Assembly: GCA_965649825.1 (NCBI GenBank)
Contig: OZ287694.1
Span: forward strand, 1,301,197 to 1,365,196
Direction of reading: 5' to 3'
Source of the DNA: Penicillus capitatus
Taxonomy: Eukaryota > Plantae > Chlorophyta
Length of the DNA: 64,000 bases
Below are positions 30,365 to 64,000 of this stretch, piece by piece (the stretch's first letter is position 1; every line of letters begins with the position of its first letter). The position numbers and the translations under genes were made by a program. The notes below the pieces were generated by a model that did no database searches, was not told the DNA's origin, and worked only from the letters and a program-made list of their open reading frames with translations.

Positions 30365-31515
30365 ATGTCTGTGTCTCTTCGTTTTTCGCGCCGCACGCGC
30401 AGTACTCCTCTAGCTGGTGCCATTCTTCCGATTTCGCCTCAACTGTTCAACGACGTCGTCTGTCACGGTCTTAGCTACAACGTCGACGTCGACCCCGAAA
30501 CCTTCTCCGAGCTCAAACGCCTCAACGACACATCCCTTCTCTTCTTCCTCGTTGACTCCGAGCAGGATGGCGATGTCCTGCGCGGTCTCTTTCGACTCGA
30601 CTCGCGTCCAGAACTGGACGTCCGTTCCAGTGGCGATGGCTGCTTCGCGACAGTATCCTCAATTTCGTCTCAATCTCGGCGACATGTACGGATCACAGGT
30701 TCGCGTTGTTCGCCTGGAGACGTTGATGGATCTGCCAATTGCCACACTGCGTTGCTCGAGGCCAGACGTCTTTTCATCCGAGAAGACGTGCTTCAGCGAT
30801 TTGGAAGAGGAGCAGGTCCAGACGATCTTGTGCGCCATGCGATCGATGGGATCTGCACAGCGACGATCGAACCCACCGCGAATCGCGGACGAACTGACGA
30901 CCGATGCGGGAAGTCTGTCCAAAATGAGGAATGCCCATCAGATGGAGCCGCCATTCAATGCGGATATTCTCTCAATGGCACGCATCCGAGGAAGAGGAAG
31001 GCAGATAGATGATATCTATCCTCGGTGTCCGATACCAACACAGCCAGAGACATGGAGCGAGTCCCCGGTGAAGGCCGACGTCGATGTCCAGACAACGGAG
31101 GATCCGAGATTGGTGGAGCTGCGCTCACGCAACGCTGTGTTGCAGAAAGAGAACGCAGAACTGAAATCGCAGCTCAGACAAAAGGAGACCAAATTCGAAT
31201 CTATGAAGACGGAAACAGAGAAGATACGTCGAGCACTTTATCGGCAATTCCGTGCAGACTCCTCCTCGTCGAGAGACGCTTCCAATGAGGAAAAGAGTTG
31301 CCAGACGGATCGAGCTGCGACGCAACACGTGCAACTCCCTTCAACTCCCAGAAAGCGCAGCAGGCGAAGCGTCCAGAATCCTCCCTCCATTGCGTAGAGT
31401 TCTGCCGAAATGTCTCCACGCCCAATGGCACGGCCCACGGAATCGAAGCAACGACAGGCGGCGTCCAACATGGGACAGATCTTGTCGCTCCTTTGCCTCC
31501 CACTCCGACGCAGAG
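30365..31515 (+). pseudogene. Truncated DCD-domain gene (DCD + coiled coil, no Kelch)
   Basis: Copy of the 56664+ gene. TAG at 31395-31397 stands where the paralog has CAG, and homology ends ~31515. Confidence 0.75.
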
Positions 31516-37815: not shown

Positions 37816-39189
37816 ATGATGAATGTCGATGGATGTTCGACGTTGCTGCCCGACCGCCAGCCTCGCTCCGACGCGAGCATCGCCTCCCGAGTCATCCGAA
37901 AACTCGACCGGCACTTTCTGCTGTTGCTCGTCGGTGTCGTTTTCGTTTCGTACCTGGACCGCGGCAACATTGGATACGTCGCAAACGACCTCTGCAAAGA
38001 GCTGAACCTAAACCACGAGGAGTATGGCAGAGGCGTCAGTCTCTTCTTCTTCGGCTACCTGATTACCCAAGTCGTGGGCAACGTCATGCTCACGCGCTTC
38101 GGAGCACCTGTGTGGATCTCTTTCATTGTTTTTGCGTGGGGCTGCATCGCCGCTGCGATGGGATTTCTACAGAACAAGATGCACTTCTACGTGCTGCGTA
38201 CTCTGCTCGGCATCGCAGAAGGAGGGACGTTTCCAGCTATATACTACACCATCGCCGTGTTCTATCCTCCCGTTCATGCGACGAACGCATACAGTGTCAT
38301 CATATCCTCGGTGGCTCTATCGATGCCCGTATCGGCGCCAATTTCTGCAGGACTGATGGTCATCGGCACTTGCCTAGGCGTCGAGGGATGGAGACTGCTC
38401 TTCATCGTAGAGGGCCTGATTCCCATCGTCTACTCCGTGATTCTGTTCACCTTCATGCCAGCTTCCCCCGAGTCTGCCACTTTCCTCGAAGCGGACGAGA
38501 AGGAATGGATCGCCGCCAAGCACTGTCAAGAGAACGCGTCCGCCTTGTCGTTCTGGCAGGAAGTCAAGACAGCAGTGGCCTGCAGAACATGGCGGTTCTG
38601 TACCGTATGCGTGTTGATGACGAGTGGCATCGGCAGTATTCTGATGTTTTGGGCAACGTTGATCATCCATGACATGCTCTATCCTGATGAAGACGACGAA
38701 GACGAAGACTCCGCAACCTGCGGCACGGAGAAAGGCAATTCCGCTCTCGCTGTTCTCCTAACTGCCATACCTTTCTTGATCGCCGGAATTGTCTCCCTGC
38801 TGCCACGCTATTACACGGTTCAGAACCGGCCTCGGTTTTCTGCCTTCGTTTCGTGCTTTGGCGGCGTGATGCTGATCTGTTGGGTTGTCGCCGCGCACAC
38901 TGTCTTTATCGCGAGGTTTCTGTTTTTGACATGTGCCCTTGCTGCTCTGCATCTTGCCGCTGTCTACTTCATTGGATTGGCAATGACTTCGTGCAAGGCA
39001 TCTATTCGTTCCACTGCGGCTTCCTTGTTCGTCATGACTGGCTCGGTCGGTGCCGCCGTGTTTCCGCTTCTTTTTGGATGGTTGATGGATGTGTTTGGTT
39101 CGGAAGTGGCCTTTGTTCTTCCGACGTCCGCTTACTTCGTCGCGGCTCTCCTTGCTCTCTGTGTCAAGGATCCACTAATCGAAGATTAA
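37816..39189 (+). CDS. MFS transporter paralog (ACS family), intronless
   Basis: KLDRHFL, YLDRGNIGYVA, LGIAEGGTFPAIYYTIAVFYP, GWRLLFIVEGL. Confidence 0.93.
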   Translation: MMNVDGCSTLLPDRQPRSDASIASRVIRKLDRHFLLLLVGVVFVSYLDRGNIGYVANDLCKELNLNHEEYGRGVSLFFFGYLITQVVGNVMLTRFGAPVWISFIVFAWGCIAAAMGFLQNKMHFYVLRTLLGIAEGGTFPAIYYTIAVFYPPVHATNAYSVIISSVALSMPVSAPISAGLMVIGTCLGVEGWRLLFIVEGLIPIVYSVILFTFMPASPESATFLEADEKEWIAAKHCQENASALSFWQEVKTAVACRTWRFCTVCVLMTSGIGSILMFWATLIIHDMLYPDEDDEDEDSATCGTEKGNSALAVLLTAIPFLIAGIVSLLPRYYTVQNRPRFSAFVSCFGGVMLICWVVAAHTVFIARFLFLTCALAALHLAAVYFIGLAMTSCKASIRSTAASLFVMTGSVGAAVFPLLFGWLMDVFGSEVAFVLPTSAYFVAALLALCVKDPLIED

Positions 39190-43295: not shown

Positions 43296-43383
43296 AAAGC
43301 TGAGTATAAGTTGGCAGGTCATTTTGTTCAGAATCCCAACGATAGCAAGAGGTTTGTCGCGTGTCTGAGAACGTTTCGTTTAC

Positions 43384-46300
43384 ATGTCGTGCAACGTCCA
43401 ACTTGTCGATGTCTCAAAGCGGAACAGGCATCTTGCTCGAAAGCACCAAGCTGTTCCGGCGGCAACCCAAACAAACGCAGGAAAGCAAACCTTTACCTCC
43501 GTCGACTGCCACGAAGGTGGGACGTCAGCTTTTCAGAAACACCGTCCGTCTTCTGAAAGAGTCGACACTTGTCCAATGCCGCAGGCGAGTCAAGTGGAAG
43601 CTATCGGCCTTGTTCACCAGAGGAGGATGACTGTGGGAAACGCGTTGCTCTGATTCAGTTAGACGTCAGTCGTCTCTCAGACGGCGTGGGTCCTTCCTTC
43701 ATTGCCTTCTCGAGCGACGCAAAGCGATGCATTGTCTGCAGCGGTGGATGCCTAAGGTGCGTCGTTTCCAGCAAGAAATCGAGAGCCTGACGTACGCTGT
43801 CTAGTGTGTGGGAAACGACGCGTTTCTCTCAGCTGTGTAATCGAATGGTGTCCAGAGGACAGGAAGTTGTCAACATCAGCTTCTGCGCTGACAGCTCGTC
43901 GCGGTTTATTGTCTTCTTTGCCGATCTGTCGATGTCTGTCTTCCGCATCGAGCTAAACGACGAGTGGAATCACTCTTTTGTTCTACGAGAATCAGAGCGC
44001 TGGGCCAATCCTGTGTTCTCTGATGACTGGGACCTGTCGAATGCGAGGAAAGTCGCTCTCGTTTCCGACGACGACATGCGAAGGACGTTTGATCACCTGG
44101 CCGAAATGCCTGAACAAGGGCTGGTGCTCTCCGTGCTTTCGGACGAGGAGCGCGCGTGGGAGGCTCTCCCCTTTGCAGAGTATTTCGGATCGGACTTTGC
44201 GTATTCCTATGCCGATTTCGGGAACGACTCTCGCCTCGTCTTCGGAAACCGAAGACTGCCATCCGGGAAGGAGCCTTGTATTGTTCTCTTCCACAGAATC
44301 CGTCGCCAAAGATCCGACTGGAATGTGAGCTCTCTCGACGGAAGCAGCGGCAGAATGGACAGAGATGGGACTTTTGTGCTCACATGGGACGGCGTGGGGT
44401 CGAATGTGAAAGAGGCAGCGCATCGAGTTTACATCTACAGGACTGCAAGTGATTCAACTTCAGATCCAGGACAGATGGTCTCAACCGGCGACTGCCCGAA
44501 GACGAAGGATCCTTTTATCTCGATTGTCCTGGAGAAACACGATGCATTGGTCGGTGGCATTCTGATCGATGCTCGGATGCTGTTTACGAGTGGATCCCGT
44601 CTGCTCTCGGACAACGATGTGCTGCATTCGGCCAAGATGCTACTTTTCTACGGCAGGAACCGCGGAGAGACAGCGACAGTCTTTTGCATGGATCTGAAAA
44701 ACGAGACAATCGAGTTCCAATTGGAGACGCAGATGCCATGGTTCTCGATCGCGTCGACATCAGTAGCTCGTTTTCTTGACAGTGGAAACGTCGCCATCAC
44801 ACAAGAAGAGCAGAAGATATTCGTCTGCGTTTCGGATGGAAGGCACGGAGTCGTCCATGATCTCAGAGACGGAAGAGTGATCTGCAGGGTGCTTCTGTCT
44901 TCTCAAGACAGAAACCGAGTGCTGAAGGTGGAGTTCGATCCGACGGGTCAGTTCGTAGCTGTGGACAACGGGACAGCCATCGAGGTCTTTCGAGTGGCGT
45001 CGCCAATCGAGCTCCGAGGCGGTCGCGAATGCGCAGAGGAAACCACTGAAGCGATACTGTCAGCCCTGCGGTGTGTGGAGGAGTACGACAGCGTCGCGTT
45101 TGGACAGTTGATGGCCGAAGGCTTCGCACTGAAGAGACAGATAACGACCGAAATGGCGCCTCTCGTTGAAGCACGTGTTTTTACTGGCCATCCCAGCATT
45201 CTCAGCGATTACGAAGGATCGAACGTCACACACGTGATTCTCAGTCCGGACAGACAATCCGTAGCTGTTGTTTTGCGGGAGGGACGTTGCAAGATTTGCA
45301 TCTATCGGACGAGAGGGATACAAGGCTTCGACGGTTTCTCCGACGACACTCAGTGGAGAATGGTGACCACTGCAGAAGTGACACCTCCAAGATCATCTTA
45401 CGACGCCAGCTTCGGGATCTTCTGCTCGGCTAACGGTCAGACGGAGTTTGCATTTGCAAGTCCCCAGCACGACGGCATCCTGATTGCAAGAGTGCGATTC
45501 GAGCGTCCAGAAGATCTTGTCACGCATTGGATCGAATCGAGCATTGGCTTGCCGCTGAAGGGAATGAAAGCGACGGCGGATGGCGCTAAGGCCATCGTCG
45601 TGTTCGAGGATGGAGAGTTCGCTGTGCTCGACTTGAAAGATGGCTTTCGCACTGTCAACAGAGGCCATCTGCACTATCCCTGTGGCATCGAATACTTCGT
45701 GGAGTCGTTGATCGAAGCCTTTCCGATCCACCTGTCGACGGACAGCGCAACACTGACGGTGGGGTTGGATCCTCTGAAGAAGAAACCCGTGTCCTTCCGG
45801 CTGAACTCCTCAAGAGAAGACATGACAGCCGAGTACATGTCCAACGTGCCGCGTCTTCTGAGACTGGACGTCGAAGCGATTCTGTGGATGAATCGAGAAC
45901 AGACGAGGGCCATCGTCGGCTTCGGTGCGAGTGACCGCCTCGTCATCTACGACATCTCTCGTAAGTTCAATCGAGGACACTGACAGAGATTCATTGTCAC
46001 GTTTAGAGACTCCGGCCAAGGAACTGCACGACACGTCTGACTCATCATCTGAGCAGATCCTCGAACTCAACACTCAGTTCCGCGCTCGCCTGGAGAGTCG
46101 ACGGGATAGAGACGTGCTGTCAGAGACCAATCGTCTGTCGATGGTCTGCATGCATTTTCTGCTCGACCTGCAGCATTCAGTCCCGGATGGCGCCTTGATC
46201 GATCTGCTCGGAATCGAGATCGATGCTGACACCGTGAAAAGGTCAGAATCTCTCCCTTGTTGTCTGCCTAGAATCAAACAGTCGTCGAAGCAGGCTCATT

Positions 46301-48354
46301 TCTGAACACGGCTGTTCTGTGCTCGGACAAGGCCGAGAGGAAAGGAAGAATCTTTTCCATCACGCCGCGATAAGCAAGAAATTCGACTGTGCGGATCTGC
46401 TGCTGGACCTTGCAGCCGAAGAAGGCAAGTCCCTTAGCCTTTGTTGGGAAGACGGTGACCTCTTGGGATGGTCCATCGTCCACAAGTCAAAGGAGGTTGC
46501 TGCATTTGTGATGGAGGTGCTCGCGGAGAAGCGCACGACTGTGAGCGAGACAGCAGCAATTCTGTCTGTCCATACAGACAAGCTGTCGGAGGTCTTTCCT
46601 CAGCTTTTACGTGACTATCTCGTCGAAGACAAACTCATCTACGAGTACGGAAGGTTCCCTGTCCCTGCGAGCTTGTTAAAGAATTGGAAAGAGAAACCTG
46701 TTGCCATGGTCACGGATCCCATGGATGATTGGACGGCGACGAACAGTGAAGAGGTCAAGTCGCTCTGGCTGAGCCATTGCAAGGCTCTGAAGAAGAGCGT
46801 CCGAAAAGGGGAAGAAGAGGTGCAGATCATGGCGATTTCGAAGTTCTTCTGCCTGGAAGACATCGTTTATCGTGGAAAGGGATGTTTCTTGGCAAATCTG
46901 ATGAAGAAGGGAGTTTCGGTGGAGATCTTTGGATCCACCTTCGTCAAGTCATTGGTTCAATGGAGGTGGCATTCCTCATTGAGGAACGCGTTTTTGATTA
47001 GCGCAATGCTGCACGTGATCGCCACCATTCTGTTTTCTGTTTGTGTGGTAGAAGTGCTTGTTTATCATGGGCATGGATGCGACCTGTGGAAGCTCGAAGA
47101 TGATCCTATAAAACATTATAAACCGTACGAATGTTCTTCTGGAGTGATACGACGATATCTTGCGATTATCTGTGTTTTCATCATTTTCTACTTGGGCATC
47201 TTTGGTGTTATTCCACAAATAAGGTCACGCGTCTTTTTGATTCTTTGAGATCCAGACTCAGGTGTGCCCTGTAGAATTCTCTCGTTCTTTATAGAGCCGT
47301 TAGTGCTCTTCGAAATTATGGTTTGGGGAGATCAGTATCCGGTAAAGTCGCAATCAGCCCTTGCTGCATTGGCGTGTATGTCATGTTGGATTTCAGTAAG
47401 CATAAACGACACTCTCTTCTGATACATATCGACAGTCTTCTGTCAGATTGTGCTCTATCTGCAGCCACTGAGTGCGACAGGCCCTCTGGTGTCTATGATA
47501 CGGCAAGTCTTCCTCGATATCATGCCCTTCGCCTTGTTGGCAGCATTGTCAATCGTGGGATTCGGACTCACATTCATGATCCTGTTCTCTAAAACCTTCG
47601 AAGTGAATGACAAGAGTTACTTTAGCACTGTCTTCAAATCCTTTGAGACGCTTTTCCATGCATCCTTAGGCCAATTCGATCCGGAGGTGAGCAATCAATT
47701 GTCTGATCGCTTTTCCATTGTTTGTTTTAGATTCTTGAAGATGATGACGATTTCTCTCACGTCTTCCGTTCTCTGTTCTTCGGTGCATTTCTATTCGTCT
47801 GTGGAATTGTCATGTTGAGTTTCCTGGTCGCCATCCTGGGAGACACGTACGACAAAATCAAGTTCATCGAGAGGGCAGAGATCATCAAATGCCGAGCGAA
47901 GCTGATTGTGGTCGGAAACGGATGGAACGGAATCCCAGGAAAAATCTGGTAGAGCATATCCATTTTGTCTCAGGAGATTATTGTCTCTGTACACAGGAAG
48001 GCCTGTCTGAGAATGATGTGGAGATCGAAGTCTCCAGATCCAGTCCCACAACATCCTGTGAACATGCGTCATGCTTCTGACGTTCTTGTCAAGCCACGAA
48101 GGAAATGCTTCCACATCTTAGTACCAGTTGAACCCATCGACAGCGAGACGGTCGTTTCGTGGCAGGGAAAGATTCTTGAAGTGGTGAAGAAGTTTCGGTC
48201 TGAACTGAAAAAGAATGAAGAGAGGCTAATCGAACAGATGAGCACGACCCAGAGAGAAGTGGCGGAACAGATGAGCACGACCCAGAGAGAAGTGGCGGAG
48301 TTGAGGAAAGAGATAACAAAGCTCAACGAGAAACTGAGCAGCCAAACCTCCTGA
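43384..48354 (+). CDS. WD40-TRP channel fusion, copy A3
   Basis: Same exon structure as A1 and A2, with a 33-nt in-frame duplication in the C-terminal coiled coil. Confidence 0.87.
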
Positions 48355-49097
48355 AACAAGCCAGAACAAAACAAGTGCATCTCGTTCAGTACATGCAACA
48401 TCCATCAGTGTGGAATCCAGAAAGAAACAGCTCTTCGCATATCAACGTTGTGGTTCACTCTTTTGGCAGCGTGCTTTACCAAATGCACATTAAATGGGGG
48501 ACCGTTATTACGCCTTCTTGGAAGCGTTCTGTGAATGCCGTGCTCGACGGTGTCCAATGTCGTCAGCCTGTCGGCAAGAACATTGACAACATTCCGCAAC
48601 CTTTACTTTTATATTCTTTTGCTGATTGCTGTCTCAGTTCGTGGAACTGTTTAGCTTTTCGGGGGGATTTGCACATGCTTTTTGTATAGTTTGCTTGAGC
48701 GATGCCTTGCCTGTCACTTACAGGACAAGGTGTTTTATCTTTTCTATGAGGTGGCAGTCATGATTGATGCGCCGCCGAGACGAAAGTACCTCTTTCACTA
48801 TTTGGGCTACTTTCACTGAAACCGTTACCAGAATAGAGATGGTATAGAACTCCATGTGCGACGATCGTTGATTTTTCTTGGCAGAAACTGTCATCACAGA
48901 TGCAGAACTCAACATTCAACTGTTCTATAAAAGAGTCTATCATACGACGCGCATGCGGTACGTCTTTATAGCAAGACTTCCCCCGCGGTTCACTCTCGAG
49001 CTGAGAAGGAAAGAAAGGAAGCCGTGTGTATCGCCGAGGAGTACAGAGTCCGATCATTGACAGTCATCAATGGAGAGAGGTTCTCTTACAAAGCAGT

Positions 49098-50178
49098 TCA
49101 TCCAACAGATGCATCAGCAGAATCTGTGCCTGTTTGCGTCCTGCGCTTCCTAGCAAGATATCTCTCCCTCGCGGAAGCAATAGAGGCATCGTCGTTTCTT
49201 CGTTTACGACGGCCAGCCATTGGATCGTGTGGCGAAGCGCGCCCATCACTCACAGGGGTATCTTCTGTCGATGGTGTGGTTTGCTTTCTTCTCTCAGGCG
49301 ATGGTGGCATCTTCACACTCTCTTCCGCGACAGCCGCAGAAATGGATTCAGATGAGTGGGCTGCAGGTTCAGCGTCTGCAGACTCGACCAGTGGCTCCGA
49401 TGGTGCCTCGGCCTCGGCTTCGGCCAACCGATTCGATGCAAAGGCAACATTCTTCGTGACGAGATTCTGATAGAACCCAGTCAGATCCGACCTCTTCGTC
49501 ACATCCTCCGCCTCCTCTATCGCATCCCTGTCCCAAGAACCGAACGAACTGTCAGCATCCGTGCACGGAGAGGAACACACATTCTTCTCTCGCGTTCGAT
49601 CCAGTATCTGTCGTCCTCGAGCTTCTTCTTGTATGCAGTGGTCAGGAACGCCTCCTTCTCGTCGTAGAGATGGTCATCCTTCTTCCGCTCTTTCAGCTAA
49701 GACAGTGATCCCCTCCTCGAGCAGACGCACGACGATCAGCATACCAGTCGCCGCTCGTAGGCGATGTCTTGTTCTTTCTTTCGAATCTCTGCCTTCTGCA
49801 TGAGCGCCTGGATGTATTTGGGTTTCCTCTCTTCCACTTCCTTTCTCTTGGGCGCCTCCCGACTGCGCTGGATGTCATCGTACACAGCATCGTATTCATA
49901 GACAGTGCTGTCCTCCGCCACTGCTGCTGCACGGGCCGCAGCAATCTGAGAACAGCCACCGCGTTTCCCACAGCAACATGTGCCGTCGTCACTTTCGAAG
50001 CCTTGAGGTTCTGCTGCTGCTGTTTCTTGAGTTGGACCTCCACTTCGTCTTCGGAAGAGGAGTCGTCGCCAAACGCTGCGGGCTTCGGAGCCGAGACCGC
50101 TTTGCCCTTCTGCAGACCGTACTTGACGCCCTTGTATCCAATCAAGACTGCCGAAGGCTTCTCTGCGTTGTCCGACAT
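49098..50178 (-). CDS. NSRP1: NSRP1/CCDC55 duplicate
   Basis: Near-identical to 3035..4115. Confidence 0.85.
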
Positions 50179-50231
50179 CGTGTTCTTACTTTTGAAGACC
50201 GATCGACGTGACAGTCCGAGCAGCAGAGAAG

Positions 50232-51029
50232 ATGGCTTTATCTCAATGGCTTCGGCGTTGGGCTCCGACAGAGAACAGGGACGAGTCTGAAGGCAAGAAA
50301 CCTCTTGTCTCGGAGAGGGAGAAAACCGAACGCCCTTCGAAGACCGAAGATTCGGCAGCAGACGCGCATTCGCCGTCGCAGCCGGAACAGCCAGAAGCTC
50401 CATCGGTAAACGAAGAGACACCAGATGACAAGGTGAACGACAGACAGACAGATTGGGTGCTTGATATGGAGGCATGATACCGTGCAGTTCTTCGACCAGC
50501 TGACGAACAAGCTCCAGAGTCCCGAATTTCTCGAAAGACTGAAAGACATGGAGCACGCCTCCCGGTCCGATCCACCACCGTCGACATCGCAAGAAGAGGA
50601 GACGGCAGACGACGTGGGGGTAGTGCCTGGTACACAGAAGCCGCTAACAGAATCGTCGTGTAGGATTCCGAGGGGAGTTTCGTGTGGGTGACCGAAGATG
50701 ATGCGATGGAGGGATTGGTGGAGACCATTGCTCAGTGCATTCTCTCGTGTCCAGAGGCGCATCAGATTCGACCTCACGAGCTGCAAGACGCCATCGTGAC
50801 CGCCTGCAAAGTGCGAGATCACTCTCTGGAACGCGTCACCTTATTGTATCGTTCCCAGGATTTGAAGAAGAGCAAGGCTAAGTCAACGTGGGGATGGCTC
50901 ACATTCATCTACCGCGCGGCGTCGTGGAGCTACAGCGCCTTCAGCTTCTACACCAATCCCTGGATCCTGCGAGCCATTCTCGCCGCCCTGTGCTCCGTGC
51001 CGAGACTTCTAGGACGATTCTTCCTCTGA
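50232..51029 (+). CDS. Uncharacterised plant-type protein duplicate
   Basis: Near-identical to 2183..2982. Introns GTGAAC..GTGCAG and GTAGTG..GTGTAG keep the frame. Confidence 0.65.
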
Positions 51030-51087
51030 AACGCACTCCGATGACACGCTGTTACAATAGAGGTGTCACTAGTGGTCTATCCGTTCA

Positions 51088-52147
<1,060 letters not shown>

Positions 52148-52245
52148 GACGGACGTCTTAATGGATGACGACGATCGGACAGATCTCTTCATCTTTGCCT
52201 TGCTCACGGCCAGACCACAACGTCTCCTCTCTCGCCTTACGAGCG

Positions 52246-53062
52246 ATGGTGCGTCGTCGAATGTTCTCCGACATGAGAGATCTGTCTCGTGGCTTCAGTC
52301 GGCGTCCAGTGTGCAGAAGGGACTCAGTCTCGGCGTCAAGGACGCTTCCAAACAGCGAAGAGGCGCAACGCCGTCGACGCGATTGAACGCCGTTCCCAAG
52401 AAGGTGAGAGATCCGTTCTCGTTCGTATTCTGTGTCCAGTGACGCGACGTCGTGCATGCAGCTCAATACATTGGACAAGGATTGGACGAAGGTCGTTGAC
52501 AGTGCCTCCATATGGGACTGACTCATGTGCACGCGTGTGGTGCAGAGGTTCTTCGGATACGGAATGTTTTCGGAAGACCAGGAGAACACGACCGTCAACG
52601 TCTTCGAAAAGTACCTCGATCTGCATTCCCATCGAATCTCTGCCGCACCGCGTTCCCCAGACTGGAGCGAAAGAAGGTTCTGAGTTCCGTCGAGTCTGCC
52701 GGTTTGCTCTCCGCTGCAGAGAAGGTGAGAGAAGAGTGATCGAAGGATGATCATGTGCGGAAGATGTGTGACAGGCGGGACTGACATTGGGGAAGATCGA
52801 AGAGTTGGGTTTGCTGTCGACTGCCGAGGAATTGGGAATCCTGTCCGTCGCCGAGGACGCACTGACGACGAATCCAGGCACAGTCACGTCACTGTCCATT
52901 CCGTTTCTGGTGGCGACGATCGGCGCTTTGGTCTTCATTCCCGGAGACAACCTCGTCGAAGCCATTCTTCGGTACGGAGTGGCTGGAGTTCTGGGAACTG
53001 GATTTCTGGTGTTCTTCGCCGGTGGATTCGTTCTTGCCTCTCTGCAGGCAGAAGAGGAATGA
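52246..53062 (+). CDS. DUF1118 duplicate
   Basis: Same exon structure as 162..977, including ATG|GTGCG...CAG|TCG. Confidence 0.8.
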
Positions 53063-53862
53063 GAGACGGCAGAGATCACTCACCGAATCCTCGGACGTCG
53101 TTGATTGGCTTCGATCCATTGGCAGCCCTTTTAGACTCTATTGTTTTTTGATGATTGTAGAGTGCGACAGTACTCCTGCGAAAGACAGATTCAGACCTCG
53201 TCAATGATCGTCCCAGTGATTTTGCGAAAATGCGTGAAGGATACAGTGATAATGAAAGCCAAGAAACGACGGCTGATTAAGAGGAGCAGCATGATGTTGC
53301 CGAATAGAAAACAGTGACGGCACAGAATCGCGGCCGGTTGCCAGCGGCATCGTAACGAGGCAGCAGACGGATCGAATAGATAAGGACCACCGTCTAAATC
53401 AGAACACTCTGACAATCGATTACATGAGAAGCAGCCAGTAAGACTCCTTTGATCGCCAGTGGGTTACGTCTTCTGTCTCTTATCCTTTGGCCGAACAGAC
53501 TCCAACGGATGCAAAACAGTCTTCGATTCTGCCGCATCTGATGTTATTCGCATCATCTGCCGTGCAGACGATTCTCCGTTGAGAAATCGAAGATAAGGAT
53601 AAACGTATAAGAAAGATCTGACAGACGTAGAGTCTGTCACTGGAAAGAATGTTTGCAAAAGACATCTACAGACTTCAAGGTCATCAAAAAACAAGTCAAC
53701 CCCCAAGCAAGGCACATAATCCGAAACACAGTTTATGTGTTTTCGAAAGCATCAAATAACACAGCACCCTCGTGTTTGGCCCCGATCGATCTTCTGTAGA
53801 ATACAAGAAAGCGTTTTCGGTATTGTCTGCATTTGATGTTTTTATCTTTTATTATGGTGTCG

Positions 53863-56193
53863 TTAGGCTGCTAAACTGTCCACCAATGCTTGTGTGCGTC
53901 GACTAGCGGTCCGGGTCTTCTTTTTCAGTTCTCTCTTGAGGCTCTTTTCGATCTCACGGATGTTTTCCTCCCACAAATCGCTTTGCTCTCTTCCTGTTCT
54001 TTCGACGGGGACCAAATAGTGAAAGTACTTGCCACTGGATCGCTGACGGATCTTGTTTCTGCAAAGACAGGATCTGAAGAATGGCGCTATCGATGACATC
54101 CGTCTGAAGATTGCTCTCCATCCAAAGCAGCCACTGTCCAAAAGAAACGATGTGAACACAGCGGAGGCATTTGGCGATGCTAACCGGTGCTCGTCTTCTA
54201 ACGTGATGTTGCGATGAATGATGGAAGACACAACATCGCCTGCTATAGCGGCACGGTGCCTGGCCGCCCTAGCCGTCTTCATGAGTTTGGAACGATATCT
54301 GGTATCAATCAGAATGATAATCCAAAGGTTAATCAAAAGAACTGCGCCGAGAAACGCAAGGAAATTATAGGCAAACGCTTTCCATACGCTAACCCACCCT
54401 GCCGTCGAACTGATTTCCTTCATGGCAAGCCACATGTTATCGAGGAAAGAGAACTTCACCAAATAGTCACCGTCACCGAACAAAAGGCGGGACAATAGAC
54501 TAAAGCCCCCACGGCAAGAATAAAGAGCGTATTCGCAATCTCTGCCATCTTTGTATTTGCGTAAATCATAAAAGCTGTTGACCTCGAAGCCCATCGAAAA
54601 CATAATAATTGCGGCAATGCAATAAAAGACAAGGTCTATGACGAAAATCAACACGAATGACAAGGAAAATCTATTAAGTGCGCAAGTGCAACAATCGACA
54701 ACGATTGCGACGAAATAGAACAAACGATCGAGTCTTGACACGAATGGTCCATGAAGTCCATGGTACAGACACAATCTCATCTCCTACAAATAAAACACAC
54801 GAACATTTCGTGCATACCAGGTGACACGGCGTGCAATGATGCTCACTTGAAGAGACCAAAGGATGGACTCGAAGGACACCACGATGGCGGAGAATCCCGT
54901 GAAGTCTTTCAGTCTCACAAAATCTGCCATGCGATACAACAGAATTGCACCGGTTGGAACGCTAAACATTCAGCACCACAACTATTATTCACGGTTCATC
55001 TTGTGGTGTGTTGTCTTACTAGATCCATAAGCGTCTAATCTTGAGTTCATATATTCGAAAAGTCGCGAAAGAGAACAAATAGCTCGTGGCAAACATCCTC
55101 GCTGAGTGCGACGGATCTTCTTCGTCTTGCAATGCTTTGGGACTCCAAGCAATACCGAAAAGGAGCACCCCGGCAAGGACCTCTAATATGATGAACAATC
55201 CGAAGCGCCCGCGGAATGCGCCGAACACCCAGTCGGCGATAGCTTGCAAGGCTTCGGAGTTGACGACTCTCATCGGAATACGTCGTTGGCTTAGAAGTAA
55301 GCCAAGGAAATGATATCGGACGCGGCGCTCATTTGGACCAACAGTGTCATCAGACCAGCTTTGACGGACAGAGTGTTGATTGACACAGAGGAACTTGGCA
55401 ACGGCTTCGACCTGAACACCCGACGTCTCATCAAACGCCGTTCGATGTTCTTCACAGTTCTTTGACCAGAACTCCTTCACTGCTGCACTGTCCAGCGACG
55501 TCCAGTCCGTTAGTTTTTCGTCCGTTGTCATTCCGACCAGACCTTCAGGATTGTCGAACAGAGTAGCAGGCACCATCACTCTGCCATACTCGAAAGAGAA
55601 GGCGTCTCTCTTCAAGTAATCGAGCATGAGATTGGGGAATGTCTGTGTCAGTGGGAGCAAGTAGTTCGTCAGAATGTTGCAGGATTCGTCCACTGTGAAC
55701 TGTTTAGCCGCAACGCGATCGAGAACGAACTTTGCGACAGCCACAGAGTCTTGTGCTGTCCCATGGTCTAATGTGACACACTCTCCAGTGTCGATCATGA
55801 CGAACAGTTTGTACTTTCTTTTAAATTCCAACAAAATCTCTGCGCAATCGAAAAGGCAGTTCAGGATAGCGTCACAGAGAAGATCGATTCCTTCGTCTGT
55901 CCGGAAATTAATCACCTCGTACCCATACTTAAAGGTCAGCCTGCACACAAAGATACCAACACTTGTGTCACGGCTTCTGTATCTCACTCTTTCGTTGCCT
56001 CCTCGAGCCACGATCGGACAGAGATCCGTTCGTTTTCACCGATTGCAATAATACTAAGTTGAACGTCATCATGCTCCTCTGAAACAACAACAGAGTGAGG
56101 ATGCGTTTCAGAGTCGGTCGCGCTATAGGGACCTGTGAGTGGGCGGTATAGTGAACTCTCTCTTCTTCTGGGTGTTCGACTGCTCGAACTCAT
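53863..56193 (-). CDS. TRP-like channel subtype D, copy D2 (apparently intact)
   Basis: Spliced MSSSSRTP...KE|LTFKYGY...WIY|VPTGAIL...SLQ|EMRLCLY...HGPFVSRL, AYNFLAFLGAVLLINLWII, ARAARHRA, KYFHYLVP. Pore loop SRLLFGDGDY differs from the LG(Q/N)(F/I) motif of subtypes A-C. Confidence 0.75.
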
Positions 56194-56663
56194 TGTCGTC
56201 TGATAGACAAGGGGGTCTACGAAGAGCAAAAGTGGCACTGTATCAACAGACGTTCACTGTCGGTTGTGCAACACTGAGAACAAAGAACCGTCGGCTCGTC
56301 GTCAAAGCTAAACACCTCTGTCGTACTTCTCGTCGGACAGTCTTATGCAAGAACACTCTTCAAGCAACAACTTTCTCAGAATAAGTACGAGTTGTCGTTG
56401 CTGTAGTTCCATAGAACTTCTCGCCTTCTCATCCTAATTCGCCATTCGTCATCCATCACGAGAAGCTCTTCTGCGCCGATGTAGCACGTGCACACGCGGA
56501 TATTCGCCTCGGACAAGCACCGTATGCATGCCGTAGCTATCCCATTATCGTACACCTCGTCCGTTTGAGGAGGCATTGCGCGGTATCACGTCCGCTGAAG
56601 GTCGCGCTGCTGCTGTCTTCCGTACGTCTTTGATCGAACGTTCTGCTGTCTCCCCCAAAACGA

Positions 56664-59226
56664 ATGTCTGCATCTCTTCGTTTTTCGCGCCGCACGCGCA
56701 GTACTCCTCTAGCTGGTGCCATTCTTCCGATTTCGCCTCAACTGTTCAACGACGTCGTCTGTCACGGTCTCAGCTACAACGTCGACGTCGACCCCGAAAC
56801 ATTCTCCGAGCTCAAGCGCCTCAACGACACATCCCTTCTGTTCTTTCTCGTTGACTCCGAGCAGGATGGCGATGTCCTGCGCGGTCTCTTTCGACTGGAC
56901 TCGCGTCCAGAACTGGACGTCCGTTCCAGTGGCGATGGCTGCTTCGCGACAGTATCCTCAACATCGATCTCAATCTCGGCGACATGTACGGATCACAGGT
57001 GCGCGTTGTTCGCCTGGAGACGTTGATGGATCTGCCAATTGCCACATTGCGTTGCTCGAGGCCAGACGTCTTTTCATCCGAGAAGACGTGCTTCAGCGAT
57101 TTGGACGAAGAGCAGGTCCAGACGATCTTGTGCGCCATGCGACCGATGGGATCTGCACAGCACCGACCAAACCCACCGCGAATCGCAGACGAACCGACGA
57201 CCGATGCGGGAAGTCTGTCCAAAACGAGGAATGCCCATCAGATGGAGCCGCCATTCAATGCGGATATCTTCTCAATGGCACGCGTTCGAGGAAGAGGAAG
57301 GCAGGTAGATGATATCTCTCCTCGGCGTCCGATACCAACACAGCCAGAGAGATGGAGCGAGTCCCCGGTGAAGGCCAACGTCGATGTCCAGACAATGGAA
57401 GATCCGAGATTGGTGGAGCTGCGCTCACGCAATGCCGTGTTGCAAAAAGAGAACGCAGAACTGAAATCGCAGCTCAAAGCAAAGGAGACCAAATTCGAAT
57501 CGATGAAGACGGAAACAGAGAAGATACGCAACGCCCTGTTTCGGCATTTCCGTGCAGACTCATCGTCGTCGAGAGACAAATCCAATGAAGAAGCGAGTTG
57601 CCAAACGGATCGAGCTTCGACGCAGCACATACCACTCCCTTCGACTCCCAGAACACGTAGCAGCCGCAGCGTCCAGAATCCTCCTTCCGTTGCACAGACC
57701 TCTACCGAAATGTCCCCACGCCCAATGGCACGGCCCACGGAATCAACGCAATGGACAGGCAGCGTCCACCCCGAGACAGATTTTGTGCCACCGCTGCCTC
57801 CTATTCAGACGCATTGTGTTGATCAAGAGATGCCGAATACATCCTCTGTGCATTCGTGGAAGGACGAGAGAGATCTGAGTCAAGGGACGATCCATTCCAT
57901 GCCACCTCCACTGCCACTCCCGCTTCCACTTCCTTGGGTTAACACACAGCCGGAGTGGGATACGACATTGTCGTCGACGCAGCTGGCTCCAGCGCCGTTT
58001 GCTGTTTCGCTGCCGCCACCCATTTTTGGATGCGCCTCGCCTAAGGCCATCCAGAGATCAGCACCCGTTGCGATCTCTGTGGACAAGATGGCAATTGTTG
58101 GAGGCCTCATTGAAGGAAAGGAAGCCTCCACAGTAGGAGACCCCACACTTATCCTTCAGCATCGCGAGCTAACTACTGTTATGTTCGTTTGTGCCTATAC
58201 AGATGGATGTTTTCGATGTTGGACAGCAATCCTGGCGCAATGTGCTTTATCTTCCCTCAGGTTCGATTCTTCACAAGCACCTGTCACATCACTGTATTCT
58301 ATAGGAGTGTCTTTTCTCTGGGGAGGTGCGGCCTTGATTCGTGAGCATCTCTTCTTGATCGGAGGCATCAATGGCTCGATGCCGATCGATCTAGTTCGAC
58401 ACTACAGTTTTCGATCGAGTGAGCATGGCATCTCTGGTATCGCATATCCCACGTGCCGTTTGCAGAGGAGTGGGATCTCTTGTGCCCAATGCCAGTTTGC
58501 CGGACAGGCGTCGTCTCGGCCGAACTGAATGGAAAGATCTATTTTGCAGGGGAAACGTATCAGATCAAAGATATCGCTGAGGTCTACAGTCCAGACATCG
58601 ATCGCTGGTCCAACCAGATGCCTCCCTGTGAAGTCCGGTCCGTTTTCCCTCTGCCGTTTCTCCACCCATGGCCCTTCTCTGTGCAGTTGCCAGCACGGAA
58701 TGGCGGCTGACAGCAACCGAAACGTTATCTATGTCTTCGGCGGACGCACACAGCACAAGAGATACGCCACATCGGTCGAACAGTATGATCCGCGTCAGGT
58801 CAGGGATCGCCTGTCTACTGGCCTGATATGATCCGAGTGTGTATCATACAGGGGTCGTGGCTGCAAGTGGGACAATTGCCGACGCCGCGCGAGAGTGTTT
58901 TTGGATTATGCAGCTCCGAGCGTCTCGTCATTATGGGAGGAGCAACGCTGATGCAGAAGGAGGCCTTGGGATTCGTCGAGCTCTTCGATCTCAGAGCGCA
59001 GCAGTGGACGGAGGGCCCGCCGATGATGCATGCACGGAAGGAAGGGGCAGCAGCGAGGCTGGAGGAGGATATTTATGTGGTGGGCGGTTTTGATAGAGAC
59101 AAGAATCCACAGGAGATGGAGAGGTGGCGTCAGGGAGGTGGATGGGAAGCAGGACTGACAGATGGGACCATTGACGCACGATGTCTACACAGAGTCTTGA
59201 AGATTCCCAACCACCTCACCGATTGA
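56664..59226 (+). CDS. DCD (development and cell death) domain + coiled coil + Pro-rich linker + Kelch repeats, multi-exon
   Basis: The N-terminus matches the DCD pattern (GAILP, LLFFL, LRGLFRLDS, T|VRV, DLDEEQVQTIL). Kelch exons: VIYVFGG..VEQYDP, LVIMGG..VELFD...W..GPPMMHAR, IYVVGGFD. Exon boundaries are approximate. Confidence 0.8.
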
Positions 59227-59726
59227 GGCCTGCCTCTCTGAGATGCAAATGGGGGTTCTGAAGAAAACGAACGATTTCAAATGCCATCGGGATTTTACTC
59301 GATGAACGGTTTCTGCAATGGATGACTTGTGGGAAGTGATGTGGGAATCATGCAGAAGCGACGGCAGGGCGCTTAGAAAAATCGAATCGATGTCGATCGT
59401 CGACAGCGAAGTGCTATCGACGGGACTGGCAAACTGTGCTTATGAACTGACCCACGCCTGTCACATCGCCGCCGCCGGACATGTGGTGACATTGAGATCC
59501 GATGCATCCGACCGAATACAAAGCCTGTTCAAAAAGTCAGAAGAAATACCACTGAATGCCGTTCCATATCCTATCCATCGACAAACTCAGGCAGGCAGCA
59601 CAGGGAGATGCATTCCAGGATTTGTTAGGAACAGTCGAGAACACGGCACTGCCGTTATGCATGATATCTGTATGGATAAGAACTTTACTGGACAGATCTT
59701 AGAGCATCGAAATCGTATGGACGATA

Positions 59727-61121
59727 TCAGACCTCCACTGGTGTATCTTCACTCAATCCCCATTCTGTCCACGAGCCATCGTACACAGCAACCTGGTCCA
59801 CACAAAGGCATTCCTTATTCCGGAACAGCAGACGGTCATCGATTCGCAAGAGGACTTGACGTACGTGTTTCTTGAATCCTAGATGCGCCAGCGCCAGGGC
59901 AATGGCACACGCCGTCACACCAGATCCACATAGACATGTCGCATCGGTGTTCATATCCACACCTTCAACCATCAAAGCCTCACGTGTCACCCTTTGCTTT
60001 TTAGATTCTCGAAACCTGCAGTTTTGATCAGTTCCATGAGTTCTGCCTTGCTTTTGATGTGACCATCTTCTGTGACGATCGATTCGAGGGGGACATTTCG
60101 GCTGCCAGGGATGTGCCCGGATCGGACGCCTTCCCGCGGTTCGGGTACCGTTCCATCGAATCGCCCAGGCGGTCGTGCGTCAAGTAACTGCTCCGCCTTC
60201 GTTTCCAACAGTTTTTTCACGTCATCAAGACTCCGGACCTGAACTGCAGCTTCAGAGCAACTACCGCTGTTCCATACGATTCAACCTGTGCTACGTCTAA
60301 CCGAGCTGGGTATTTTGTGTTGACGACACCATCTAGTCCAAACTTACAGGCGATGGATGCCGCCATGATCGTGTCTTCGTTCTCATTTGGTGACTCTTCC
60401 ACTTCGAGTCCTGCCGCTTTCCATGCCGGAAAGCCTCCATCGAGTACAGACACACTGTACAGGTGCTGTCACATCATGCAGAGAACAAGCAAGGCGTGCA
60501 CTTTATGTGGCCGAAGACTTTGAACATCCACCAAGCACGAGGGGCGCTGAATAGTCCAGCTCCATCGTATACGACAATGTGATCGCTGACTTTGATCTGT
60601 AGCGCATCGGCCGCAGCGGCGAAGCCTTTCGCATAGGGCAGCATGTGTGGCAAATTCATCTTCCTGTCACATCAATCATGTCGCACAACGATGTGGAGAT
60701 CGATCGATCGATCGATGATCATTTACCCGTCGGCGATGCTATTGACATCAAAGAACTGTGCACCGGGGATATGTCCGCGTCTATACTCCTCAACGGGATT
60801 GCGGCCTAGGAGCTCGGTACGCTCGTACACCTCTAGACGCATTGTGGCGGCTGACCTGCTGTCGGCAGATACCATGACGCATCTAAGATCTTCATCGTCG
60901 TTTCGTTCCGGCTGAAATGCGCCACGTGAAGTGATTGCTGGATAGAAAGCTTCTTCGTACTTTTCCTTGAGCCAGTCGACATCGACAACAGGCTTGACGG
61001 TCATGATAGGTTTGCGTGCTGCTCCGACGGTGACGTGAGAGAAACGAAGACGTATCGGACGACGATGACGCGGAAGGAAACACTGTGAAGATAACCGCTT
61101 ACCCAACAGAACGCCGGTCAT
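59727..61121 (-). CDS. MPST: Thiosulfate/3-mercaptopyruvate sulfurtransferase (tandem rhodanese), multi-exon, organellar transit peptide
   Basis: GHIPGAQFFD, LPHMLP, VVYDGAGLFSAPRAWWMF, VLDGGFPAW, DARPPGRF, RSGHIPG, CGSGVTA, YDGSWTEW. Confidence 0.93.
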
Positions 61122-61218
61122 TTTCCGTTGCGAATCGAAAGACGAATGATCGATCTTCTCGTCGAAACCGATCGATCCGATCGCATCGACACGACGTCCG
61201 CATCTCATTCAAGGGACG

Positions 61219-62247
61219 TCACACAAAGAACCTCGGCGATTTCAGCAGCAGAATCCGGATCAGATCGGGAGGTACACCCATGCTGCGCATTTCGTCCATC
61301 TTCTTGGCTAGACCCTCCTTCAGCGAATGCTTCAAGATCTGAGGTCGATGGACCAAGATACGAAAGAGCTCCAGCTGATCCAGATCGAATTTTTTGAGGT
61401 ATTCGATCTTTGGCCGAATATCGCGATCGACATCGGCAGCGAGAACATGGGGATAGATTTCCAGCATCTGACCAAACAGTCGTCTGCCCATATTGAGCTC
61501 GTCCAGAAAATAACGCGCAAATGGCCGCAGCTGGTCTTCCTTAGACAGCAGCATTACGTTTGGAAACCGGCAGAGAACGTTTTTTAAACATGCCGAGAAA
61601 CAAGTGTTGCGCAAGAACTCCAGTCTTGGATAGATTTCTGTATGATAGGTCGAGCCCAAGACTTGAGGACACTCCAAGATCACACTTTTCGCCACCTCCT
61701 CCAACGACAGTCCAATGCGCATTAAGTACTTCACACGGTATCGGATGTCTTTGATAATCGAGTACTGCAAAAACTCTGGACACTCTTCAAAGATCTTCAG
61801 CATCTCGTTGTCCGACAAAAGGAGCCGTTCTTGGTAATAGGCCATGCGCGGCTGAATATGCGCCGCCAGTGAGAGCGACAGAATCTGTGGCATCTTCATG
61901 ACCACATGGCAAATGAGAGATGTCGAGAGCCCTCGAGACAAAAGGTACATCAGATTCTTTCTCGAGGCCTGGGTGTGATCCAGGGCCATGACGTGAGGCG
62001 AGTAAGACACCATGTCACCAAATTCGACGACGCTCACGCCGATGCGTCGATAGAATTCGAGATGCCTTTTCATGCGCGGTATATCGAGCAGTGCTCCTTC
62101 GAGTCGTGGCAGGGCGCGACCAAAGGTATCGCGGTACCATTGAACGACATCCGGCGGCGCTGGAAGCTGTTGAATGCATTCATCGCTGGAGACAATGCGT
62201 GAGGACAGCCAACGACATCCCGCGGCCCTTCGATGAAAAACGCGCAT
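61219..62247 (-). CDS. mTERF family protein, intronless
   Basis: Repeated motifs (MPQILSLSL..HIQPRMAY, CPEFLQYSI..DIRYRVKYL, YPHVLAADV..DIRPKIEYL) and an Arg-rich transit-peptide-like N-terminus. Confidence 0.88.
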   Translation of the reverse strand: MRVFHRRAAGCRWLSSRIVSSDECIQQLPAPPDVVQWYRDTFGRALPRLEGALLDIPRMKRHLEFYRRIGVSVVEFGDMVSYSPHVMALDHTQASRKNLMYLLSRGLSTSLICHVVMKMPQILSLSLAAHIQPRMAYYQERLLLSDNEMLKIFEECPEFLQYSIIKDIRYRVKYLMRIGLSLEEVAKSVILECPQVLGSTYHTEIYPRLEFLRNTCFSACLKNVLCRFPNVMLLSKEDQLRPFARYFLDELNMGRRLFGQMLEIYPHVLAADVDRDIRPKIEYLKKFDLDQLELFRILVHRPQILKHSLKEGLAKKMDEMRSMGVPPDLIRILLLKSPRFFV

Positions 62248-62261
62248 GATCGATCATGCGC
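62242..62261. other. Perfect 20-bp palindrome containing both divergent mTERF start codons
   Basis: GCGCATGATCGATCATGCGC equals its own reverse complement, with CAT at 62245-47 and ATG at 62256-58. Confidence 0.95.
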
Positions 62262-63398
62262 CGCGCATTCCGGCCGGGTTTTCTGCGTCGTGCCTGCTCG
62301 ACGAAAGAACTCGTTCTCGTAGATCAAACGCCGATCGCGGCGGCCCATGTCTCGGAATCGAATGCTTGGCGCTACTTAAGGGGACTCGGATTGACGGAGA
62401 ACCACTGTGCGGCACTGGAGAATCGCTTTCCTCTTCTCCGACGCGTGTCTTTTCGCCAACCTCTCAGCGCAAAGATCGCCTTTCTTTCCGATAAGGGCAT
62501 GAATCGACGCGGCATGCGGCGTTTCTTCGCCAACGTGCTACAGATCTACCCTGAATTTCTCGATCTCGATGTCGAAACCGACATGCAACCCGTCTTCTCT
62601 TATCTCTCCACTCTGGGCCTCACAGATGAAGAAATCCTTGTCATGACGATCCAGTACCCGCATCTCATGGGCTACGGTGTCGAAGAGGTCTTCCGTAAGA
62701 AGGTCGATTTTCTCAGGGAGACGCTCGTCGATGATCCACAAGACATTGCCCAGATGATCTTCTCCTTTCCACAGTACTTTGGCGTCAGTCTCGAGAACAA
62801 TATCTGTCCCGTCGTGACGTACTTCATGGAAGAGATCGATCTGGATAAGGCGGCTTTGCGAAAGGTGTTTTCGAAATGCCCTCAGATCTTTGGCCTGCGT
62901 CTCGATGCGACGCGTGCGAAACTGGATTTTCTGATCGAAATGGGTTTCGATCTGTTTACCATTCGGGCGCTGATCAAACGCTTTCCCGCTTTCCTCAGAG
63001 CATCGTTGAGGCATCATATCCATCCGACGCTCTGCATTCTGCTCGAATACGGAACGCGGTACATCGTCCGGAAAATTTTCTACAAGTGCCCGCAATGTCT
63101 CTGCCTGTCCTATGACGAAGAGATTCTTCCCAAGTTTCGTTTCTTCGTCGAAATGGGATACGATAATTACGATCTCAAAGTCCTGCTGGAGCAGTTTCCT
63201 GAAGTTCTGTGCTATTCGTTGGAGGACGAGATTATGCCGACGGTTGAGAAATCGTTGGACATCGGAGTGCCCTTCGTGGAAACGCGCATTACATTCGCCC
63301 GACATCCAGAGCTTTTCCGTCAGTCCATTGCGAAAGTGACAGACGACATCGATAACGAAAAAGACAAGAGATACGAACCCAAACGGCTCACTATATGA
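62256..63398 (+). CDS. mTERF family protein, intronless
   Basis: Repeats YPEFLDLDV..DMQPVFSYL, FPQYFGVSLE.NICPVVTYF, FPEVLCYSLE.EIMP, and an Arg-rich N-terminus. Confidence 0.9.
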   Translation: MRRAFRPGFLRRACSTKELVLVDQTPIAAAHVSESNAWRYLRGLGLTENHCAALENRFPLLRRVSFRQPLSAKIAFLSDKGMNRRGMRRFFANVLQIYPEFLDLDVETDMQPVFSYLSTLGLTDEEILVMTIQYPHLMGYGVEEVFRKKVDFLRETLVDDPQDIAQMIFSFPQYFGVSLENNICPVVTYFMEEIDLDKAALRKVFSKCPQIFGLRLDATRAKLDFLIEMGFDLFTIRALIKRFPAFLRASLRHHIHPTLCILLEYGTRYIVRKIFYKCPQCLCLSYDEEILPKFRFFVEMGYDNYDLKVLLEQFPEVLCYSLEDEIMPTVEKSLDIGVPFVETRITFARHPELFRQSIAKVTDDIDNEKDKRYEPKRLTI

Positions 63399-63445
63399 GA
63401 TAACGCCCATGACGTTGTGGACCTATTCTCTGAGAGATGGATCAC

Positions 63446-63974
63446 TTACGACAGACCTTCCTCTTTGTTCAGAAGATTCAACTCTTCCTCCAGTGCCTTC
63501 ACCTGACGTGCATTCCTCTCACGCAACAGAATCTTCTGAACCAGATCATCTAGAGACGCACGGATCTATCCGGCGCCGATGCGATCGTACGGGAGATCCA
63601 CACCTTCGGGATAGCTCGATGGATCATCGTCTTCCAGCATGATGTTGATCAGCGTCTGTCTCCGGCGCTTCACTTGTCGACTCATCTCTTTCAATTCCTC
63701 AAGCGTTCCGCTGAGCAAGAGAGATTCGAAGACGTCTTTGTCGTAAGGCGGCTTCATTTGAGACAGTTCCAAACCGACGGACACCACGGGCATCGCGCCA
63801 TGTCCTATCTATCACCATATCAGCATCCATCAAGGGATTGGGTGTGAGCGTGTGCGAACAGACTTCGTATTGAACGACTTCATCACGGCTGAGAGGATGC
63901 ATGTCGGTTCGACTTCCTGATCCCACCGAGTCCTGAGGCGTTATGCGCCCCTTTGTCTTTGTGTGACGTCGCAT
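63446..63974 (-). CDS. Small hypothetical protein, 3 exons (start may lie further upstream)
   Basis: Two ~54-nt GT-AG introns join ...VVQYE|IGHGAMPVVSVG...SSYPE|DDLVQKILLRERNARQVKALEEELNLLNKEEGLS*. Confidence 0.5.
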
Positions 63975-64000
63975 CGCTGGAGCCGGGCGCTTCTTCGACC

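Follow-up and report, generated by a model that had tools for sequence, protein, structure and literature searches.

How are two genes transcribed in opposite directions if next to no DNA lies between their start codons? This question arises from a pair of divergent mTERF genes within a 64,000-nucleotide stretch of Penicillus capitatus DNA (assembly GCA_965649825.1, contig OZ287694.1, positions 1,301,197 to 1,365,196)—in the following called the window, with positions counted from its first nucleotide. The start codon of the minus-strand gene (CAT at 62245–62247) faces that of the plus-strand gene (ATG at 62256–62258) across 8 bp, and both belong to a perfect 20-bp palindrome. With a confidence somewhat above even, we read the locus as an ancient head-to-head pair of nuclear mTERF paralogues with presequences, whose spacer has collapsed and which would use one shared bidirectional initiation zone and very short mRNA leaders.

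The divergent starts 8 bp apart inside a perfect palindrome had been pointed out in the original prediction, and the sequence together with the list of open reading frames (ORFs) bears them out. An in-frame TGA lies two codons 5′ of each ATG (62247–62249 on the plus strand, mirrored on the minus strand); hence, neither ORF can be extended upstream. The palindrome is the longest within the window. Palindromes of at least 20 bp are expected 0.095 times per 64 kb and are present in 9% of dinucleotide shuffles, so that its length is uncommon, not extreme—what stands out is its position on two start codons. An independent assembly with 95.5% DNA identity to the window (L005) carries the identical 20-mer, which rules out an assembly artefact. 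The two genes lie on opposite strands with facing 5′ ends less than 1 kb apart and, thus, form a head-to-head pair. The window has no second pair of long ORFs of such tightness, and the neighboring head-to-head pair of the syntenic loci—a small gene and RTE1—retains a few hundred base pairs. Hence, the tightness of the mTERF pair is more than mere genome compaction.

The same arrangement is found in relatives. Orthologues of both genes led to loci in metagenome and Sequence Read Archive assemblies (L001, L002, L003, L004, and L006), and L005 is a contig of 1.84 Mb from ENA. Protein identity to the window is 83% for L001 and about 40 to 60% for L002, L003, L004, and L006. In all six lineages—window and L005 counted as one—the start codons abut or overlap with spacings of −2 to +8 nt, as listed in Table 1. 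Synteny downstream, with RTE1, PUB, bromodomain, and dynamin genes, is kept as well. The head-to-head mTERF pair with almost no spacer is, hence, ancient and stable; of the spacing, whose conservation had been named as a point to check, the abutment is kept while the exact distance varies. The plus-strand ATG at 62246, which overlaps the minus-type start CAT by 2 nt and forms the CATGAT core with it, shares the reading frame of the plus-type gene in relatives and is out of frame in the window. The nearest named relative is Caulerpa lentillifera (EukProt), with 45% identity to the minus-type protein, followed by land-plant mTERFs; the lineages with abutting starts are probably green-algal. Scans of JGI metagenomes for further lineages found none, and a search with the RTE1/TMEM222 homologue gave metagenome proteins as the sole close matches. 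A minus-type start in L007 (MRVFLQ...), 43 bp from the plus ATG, was withdrawn, as its sister L008 has stop codons there.

Some of these loci have peculiarities of their own. L005 matches window positions 55337–64000 with 95.5% DNA identity over 8.7 kb and 59 gap openings; its plus-type protein differs from that of the window in three internal residues—besides a downstream start set by the gene caller—and its contig was flagged in the protein search as encoding the minus-type protein. L005, thus, represents either another haplotype or a strain that is closely related. L002 lacks a stop just upstream of the junction in either frame, and at 4904–4948 its minus-type frame has extra in-frame ATGs at 4930 and 4948 (giving MALWLRMTRKVHRI-MRRF...); if these were used, the coding sequences (CDSs) would overlap by up to 44 nt. 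L006 (1–1232; ENA ERZ23493675, scaffold_1881; protein P0009) opens with a normal junction, the minus-type N-terminus in reverse and the plus-type from 147/150, until at about 495 the plus-type frame runs in frame into the minus-type body (...VYPEF followed directly by LLCNVLMHMPP...). Either the assembly produced an inverted chimera here, or the two paralogues have truly been rearranged or fused.

Table 1. The mTERF junction of the window, its two genes, and the corresponding junctions of relatives (spacings in nt between start codons).
Feature	Position	Strand	Sequence and remarks
Minus-type mTERF gene	61219..62247	-	Single exon, 342 aa, begins MRVFHRRAAGCRWLSS; from ORF list, Pfam, orthologues, and PDB matches
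Plus-type mTERF gene	62256..63398	+	Single exon, 380 aa, begins MRRAFRPGFLRRACST; from ORF list, Pfam, orthologues, and AlphaFold2 (AF2) model
Palindrome	62242..62261		GCGCATGATCGATCATGCGC; mirrored ATGCGC (minus-gene Met-Arg), (GATC)2, and ATGCGC (plus-gene Met-Arg)
Spacer	62248..62255		GATCGATC; 8 bp between start codons, tandem duplication of the single GATC of L001
CATGAT core	62245..62250		Sole junction string common to the six lineages (junction alignment)
Minus-gene codons 1–16	62200..62247	-	MRVFHRRAAGCRWLSS; presequence-like; 1 of 48 nt different from L001; must also contain any plus-gene promoter or 5′ untranslated region (UTR)
Plus-gene codons 1–16	62256..62303	+	MRRAFRPGFLRRACST; presequence-like; must also contain any minus-gene promoter or 5′ UTR
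Upstream ATG of minus gene	62255..62257	-	Out of frame, 10 nt upstream of the start, 25-codon ORF; follows from the palindrome symmetry
Upstream ATG of plus gene	62233..62235	+	Out of frame, 23 nt before the start; reverse complement of the minus-gene His5 codon; conserved in L001
Antisense ORF	62538..63410	-	290 aa, within the plus-type mTERF gene; this antisense frame is probably due to chance
Junction, window and L005			gcgCAT-GATCGATC-ATGcgc; 8 nt
Junction, L001			cgCAT-GATC-ATGcg; 4 nt, or 8-nt ORF overlap if read MIMR
Junction, L002, L004, and L006			CATGATG, tabulated as CATGATGCG; 1 nt, or 2-nt overlap
Junction, L003			CATG; start codons share 2 nt

The mTERF proteins consist of helical repeats, bind nucleic acids, and regulate the expression of organellar genes. 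Both proteins of the pair match Pfam PF02536 (gathering cut-off of 23.1 bits) with E-values of 4.9e-37 for the minus and 8.1e-40 for the plus protein (128 and 137 bits), and their assignment to mTERF in the original prediction stands. On the sequence level, both match human MTERF3 (3m66), MTERF1 (3mva and others), and MTERF4 in the PDB, as well as a Tetrahymena mitoribosomal protein. The likeness to the mTERF family—human MTERF1–4, plant mTERFs, and Chlamydomonas MOC1—is, thus, one of Pfam and sequence and, for the plus protein, also of predicted fold; it is a match at the level of the family and not of a named subfamily, with merely 16 to 18% identity to solved mTERF structures. The AF2 model of the plus protein (predicted local distance difference test score, pLDDT, of 77.8) is disordered in residues 1–33, all-helical from residue 36, and superimposes on human MTERF1 with a template modeling (TM) score of 0.56 to 0.67 and an E-value of about 1e-6 in Foldseek; the protein is, hence, predicted to form a superhelical array of three-helix mTERF repeats. 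For the minus protein, the AF2 model is poor (pLDDT of 55.7), and the mTERF assignment comes from the sequence matches.

Whether these proteins really begin at the junction decides whether the question persists. The next in-frame methionines are at residue 59 of the minus and residue 82 of the plus protein; if these were the true starts, the roughly 420 bp between them would be an ordinary intergenic bidirectional promoter. The gene caller, which is of a bacterial type, did put the starts of some relatives downstream (P0001, P0004, and P0007). Against this, no stop interrupts the reading frames after the junction ATG in any of the loci (window, L005, L001, L002, L003, L004, and L006), and all indels are in frame. 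In the first 20 codons, the proportions of nonsynonymous differences between window and L001 (pN of 0.09 and 0.14) are below those of synonymous differences (pS of 0.19 and 0.42); the N-termini, thus, evolve in the manner of coding sequence. The next methionine is preceded by invariant residues—W37 in minus-type proteins and Y40, L44, L54, and P59 in plus-type proteins—as well as by predicted mTERF helices, and L003 has no alternative methionine before the conserved domain. Taken together, open frames in six lineages, coding-type evolution, and conserved residues and helices indicate that, as far as the sequence tells, the junction ATGs are the real translation starts; downstream starts have only a very slim chance and were rejected. 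Starting there would, as had been anticipated, remove the presequence, and conserved structured protein along with it.

All 12 N-termini are basic, have their first acidic residue at positions 14 to 29, and carry an R-x-(F/L/C)-S/A-T/S motif; in the AF2 models, the N-termini of both window proteins are disordered. Short mitochondrial presequences are basic and poor in acidic residues in just this manner. Both proteins, therefore, probably carry a short N-terminal presequence of mitochondrial type, as judged by such heuristics, which would also allow for a plastid destination. Of the transit-peptide-like character ascribed to the N-termini before, the resemblance to short mitochondrial-type presequences is retained, and the support is of a heuristic kind.

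With starts at most 8 nt apart, each mRNA has to begin either a few nucleotides from its AUG or inside the CDS of its partner. The view that a conventional promoter or UTR does not fit in here is upheld by this geometry and strengthened by its conservation in six lineages. In the reading we prefer, the junction would hold a single bidirectional initiation zone, which both genes share and from which they are transcribed outward. Upstream promoter determinants would lie inside the presequence-coding DNA of the respective partner, where codon choice might be flexible, and mRNA leaders would measure about 10 nt or less—possibly nothing at all. The CA of each CATG might serve as initiator dinucleotide, and the pair would, as a consequence, be coregulated. 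Initiators prefer a pyrimidine–purine dinucleotide such as CA, and a C does precede each main ATG, which places a CA on both strands. The boldest form of this idea—the conserved CATG as a two-way initiator, at which RNA polymerase II would start at or near the A of each ATG, giving two leaderless or nearly leaderless mRNAs of organelle regulators without any noncoding promoter DNA since before the lineages diverged to about 50% protein identity—we consider unlikely.

The distribution of upstream ATGs makes short leaders plausible. A sense-strand ATG lies at most 20 nt upstream of the start in 7 of the 12 cases, and ATGs of this kind are not depleted. In L001, L002, L004, and L006, the nearest one is in frame and, hence, harmless. 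The GATC duplication, however, shifted the nearest upstream ATG out of frame for both genes and yet became fixed in window and L005, which is most easily explained if this ATG is unused, being located at the 5′ end or upstream of it. The plus-gene upstream ATG of Table 1 would be part of the leader if the transcription start site (TSS) lay further upstream. A noncoding upstream exon spliced to a site just before the ATG is unlikely, since the spacer has no AG, and in the window the first AG on the upstream side is about 49 nt away, at a position that is not conserved.

Several points weigh against the reading with short leaders. The step to such leaders we infer purely from the sequence, and no conserved promoter-like motif was found near the junction. 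Synonymous constraint shows no clear rise there, the pS values of the first 20 codons given above comparing with 0.34 to 0.36 gene-wide; the first 16 codons of the minus gene do have zero synonymous changes, and equally low windows occur elsewhere in the genes. Upstream ATGs are not depleted in the first 100 nt of the partner (1.55 versus 1.77 per 100 nt), which fits a tolerance of such ATGs equally well. We know of no leaderless or near-leaderless nuclear mRNAs from green algae. Organellar targeting is assigned by heuristics that would allow for mitochondrion or plastid, and the junction comparison is one of six lineages, with the L007/L008 lineage and Caulerpa outside of it.

The main rival to short leaders are overlapping antisense 5′ UTRs, which are quite possible, if less than probable. 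Hereby, promoter and TSS of each gene would lie tens to hundreds of nucleotides inside the CDS of the partner, the 5′ ends of the two mRNAs would be complementary, and the main AUG would be reached by leaky scanning or reinitiation—an arrangement by which two low-abundance regulators could, in addition, be controlled translationally or by antisense. The geometry permits this equally well as short leaders. Plants and animals are known to have divergent genes whose 5′ ends overlap, and upstream ORFs are abundant in Chlamydomonas. Where the nearest upstream ATGs are in frame, their use would merely lengthen a cleavable presequence; in L002, where in-frame ATGs are found as far as 42 nt upstream, the resulting extension is itself presequence-like (MALWLRMTRKVHRI). 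Position −3 in the window is C for the upstream and A for the main ATG, which favors leaky scanning. On the contrary, four out-of-frame upstream ATGs lie within the 85 nt before the plus-gene start, and two of these open ORFs that overlap the main AUG (e.g., the ORF at 62246–62494). Long leaders would also have had to bear the fixation of a GATC duplication that threw the upstream ATGs of both genes out of frame, and a hairpin with a predicted −12.5 kcal/mol would hold both AUGs within the leader.

The palindrome itself asks for an explanation as well, and it is a young by-product of the abutting starts. Facing ATGs are palindromic by definition, the second codon of both proteins is the arginine codon CGC, and the self-complementary GATC, single in L001, was tandemly duplicated in the lineage of window and L005; the palindrome follows from these three elements. 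A Met-Arg start is found in 4 of the 6 minus-type and 5 of the 6 plus-type N-termini. With growing distance from the window, the palindrome shrinks from 20 bp (window and L005) to 14 bp (L001) and to 5+1+5 nt (L002 and L006) until none is left, which marks it as young and not as a decaying relic. A (GATC)n run of the same unit as the spacer, ATCGATCGATCGATCGAT, is present at 60698–60716 inside the region of the adjacent rhodanese-like gene. That the palindrome is instead the relic of an inverted duplication that made the pair, as had been proposed, is suggested by two genes of the same family in mirror orientation about it. However, identity between the plus and minus proteins is about 22%. 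In phmmer searches, the neighbors reach 74 to 75 bits with each other, whereas a plant mTERF reaches about 100 bits with either protein; for the plus type, 150 other mTERF cluster representatives score at least 86 bits, and with each of the two proteins, more than 100 other mTERFs outscore the neighbor. A neighbor-joining phylogeny—the analysis by which a sister relationship was to be judged—recovers the plus clade in 99, the minus clade in 100, and plus and minus as sisters in 2 of 100 bootstraps. The deep distances are saturated, which leaves formal room for an ancient duplication. The two proteins are, thus, old, distantly related paralogues and not recent duplicates. As the copies are not closest relatives and the youngest lineage has the longest palindrome, which vanishes with distance—the opposite of decay—the duplication relic was rejected and deserves next to no credence.

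Similarly, the palindrome or its CGCATG...CATGCG arms might be a selected element, either a site for a dimeric factor that serves both genes or a hairpin that controls initiation; we consider this improbable. The CGCAT...ATGCG arms do recur in window, L005, L001, L002, and L006, the 20-mer has no longer counterpart in the window, and it is identical in L005 despite 4.5% divergence over 8.7 kb. Yet, the arms are the Met-Arg codons of two basic presequences and, hence, are explained by coding. L003 and L004 lack them on one side at least, and their spacing varies among 1, 4, and 8 nt—a variation that would not be tolerated by a dimer site. The symmetric binding site of the original prediction, thus, lacks support, as only CATGAT—the start codons themselves—is conserved. 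The NRF-1-type palindrome GCGCATGCGC was dropped as a candidate, since the half-sites are here 1 to 10 extra nucleotides apart and the factor family is not known from green algae. The predicted RNA hairpin weakens from −12.5 to −6.3 and −3.1 kcal/mol in step with the palindrome length; its stability is neither conserved nor better than that of shuffles (z of −0.9 to −1.6), and a conserved RNA hairpin was, therefore, rejected.

Among known systems, the mTERF pair is an extreme, conserved form of the bidirectional gene pair. Like head-to-head pairs of animals, plants, and protists, it consists of divergent genes of related function with a very short common upstream region conserved across species. 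In classical bidirectional pairs, TSSs are tens to hundreds of base pairs apart and the 5′ UTRs are separate; the mTERF starts, in contrast, are 8 bp apart (4, 1, or a 2-nt overlap in relatives), with zero noncoding promoter DNA. With the compacted genomes of microsporidia and nucleomorphs, the locus shares that transcripts must start or end inside neighboring genes (PMC6009652, PMC3629993). Such overlap is genome-wide there, whereas it is local here, with spacers of about 100 to several hundred base pairs in the neighborhood and genomes of about 90 to 146 Mb in likely relatives (10.1101/2020.07.21.211367, 10.1101/2023.11.22.568388).

The closest functional analogy to short leaders is the short-5′-UTR translation initiator (TISU)—an element over the AUG that acts in transcription as well as in translation, whose 5′ UTRs have a median of 12 nt and which is reported to be enriched in mRNAs of mitochondrial function (PMC2518114, PMC4864462). 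Its core is AAGAUGG (PMC2518114). The mTERF junction, however, reads GAUCAUGC on both strands, lacks the G at +4 as well as the upstream AAG, and does not match this motif; in addition, TISU has a single orientation and is known only from mammals. Giardia, Entamoeba, and Trichomonas have very short or absent mRNA leaders. The likeness lies in a start at or a few nucleotides before the AUG and in a promoter that could fire both ways. On the other side, these organisms use AT-rich initiators, are amitochondriate, and show short leaders genome-wide, whereas the mTERF junction is rich in GC and CpG and its host has organelle genomes.

If short leaders hold true, the junction would be a minimal natural eukaryotic bidirectional promoter without intergenic DNA, the presequence-coding regions of both genes would contain all of its information, and translation would begin at the cap or right beside it. 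This would bear on the minimum leader length of nuclear mRNAs outside the few known protist cases, on how coding and regulatory constraints share bases, and on the coordination of two organellar regulators. The relatives, with spacings of −2, 1, 4, and 8 nt, make up a ready-made natural series. Should the 5′ UTRs overlap instead, the locus would be a tidy but ordinary case of divergent antisense overlap.

Downstream of the minus-type mTERF gene, a multiexon rhodanese/sulfurtransferase-like gene follows on the same strand (59727–61208, minus). Its longest ORF begins 10 nt past the mTERF stop, which means that the 3′ end of the minus-type gene is tightly packed, too; a likelier methionine is about 100 nt downstream. 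Between the corresponding genes of L001, a tandem repeat at 4615–4975 encodes DRSFVFDSTIDHSFSTARSIIRFRQH in several frames, which was not seen at the matching place of the window. With about 51%, the GC content of the window resembles the 52.4% reported for Ostreobium quekettii, whereas Bryopsis has 45.9% and Caulerpa has 40.4% (10.1101/2020.07.21.211367, 10.1101/2023.11.22.568388). Together with the Caulerpa match of the minus-type protein, this makes a bryopsidalean green alga a reasonable lead, though no more than that. An Rfam scan of the window gave no matches.

Much of the window is filled by large segmental duplications (8–9938, 20984–31512, and 43302–57813). Direct copies are 21018–26336 and 43302–48646 (90.7% identity) as well as 26545–31512 and 52856–57813 (86%); inverted copies are 4624–9938 and 20984–26277 (91.2%) as well as 8–4948 and 48265–53214 (95.2%). 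The ORFs of these segments—of 725 aa, of roughly 300 aa, and further ones—have no Pfam match. Uninterrupted ORFs of 447 to 478 aa for MFS_1 transporters are found at 12836–14272 (minus), 15323–16666 (minus), and 37816–39189 (plus). In L005, positions 4121–4516 encode the N-terminus of a DRP5/ARC5-like dynamin (…GGQSDGKSSLLEALLG…FNVREVEIGTRRPL…) with an intron, which might serve as a phylogenetic marker; the gene is syntenic in L001, and in L002 a dynamin was not called.

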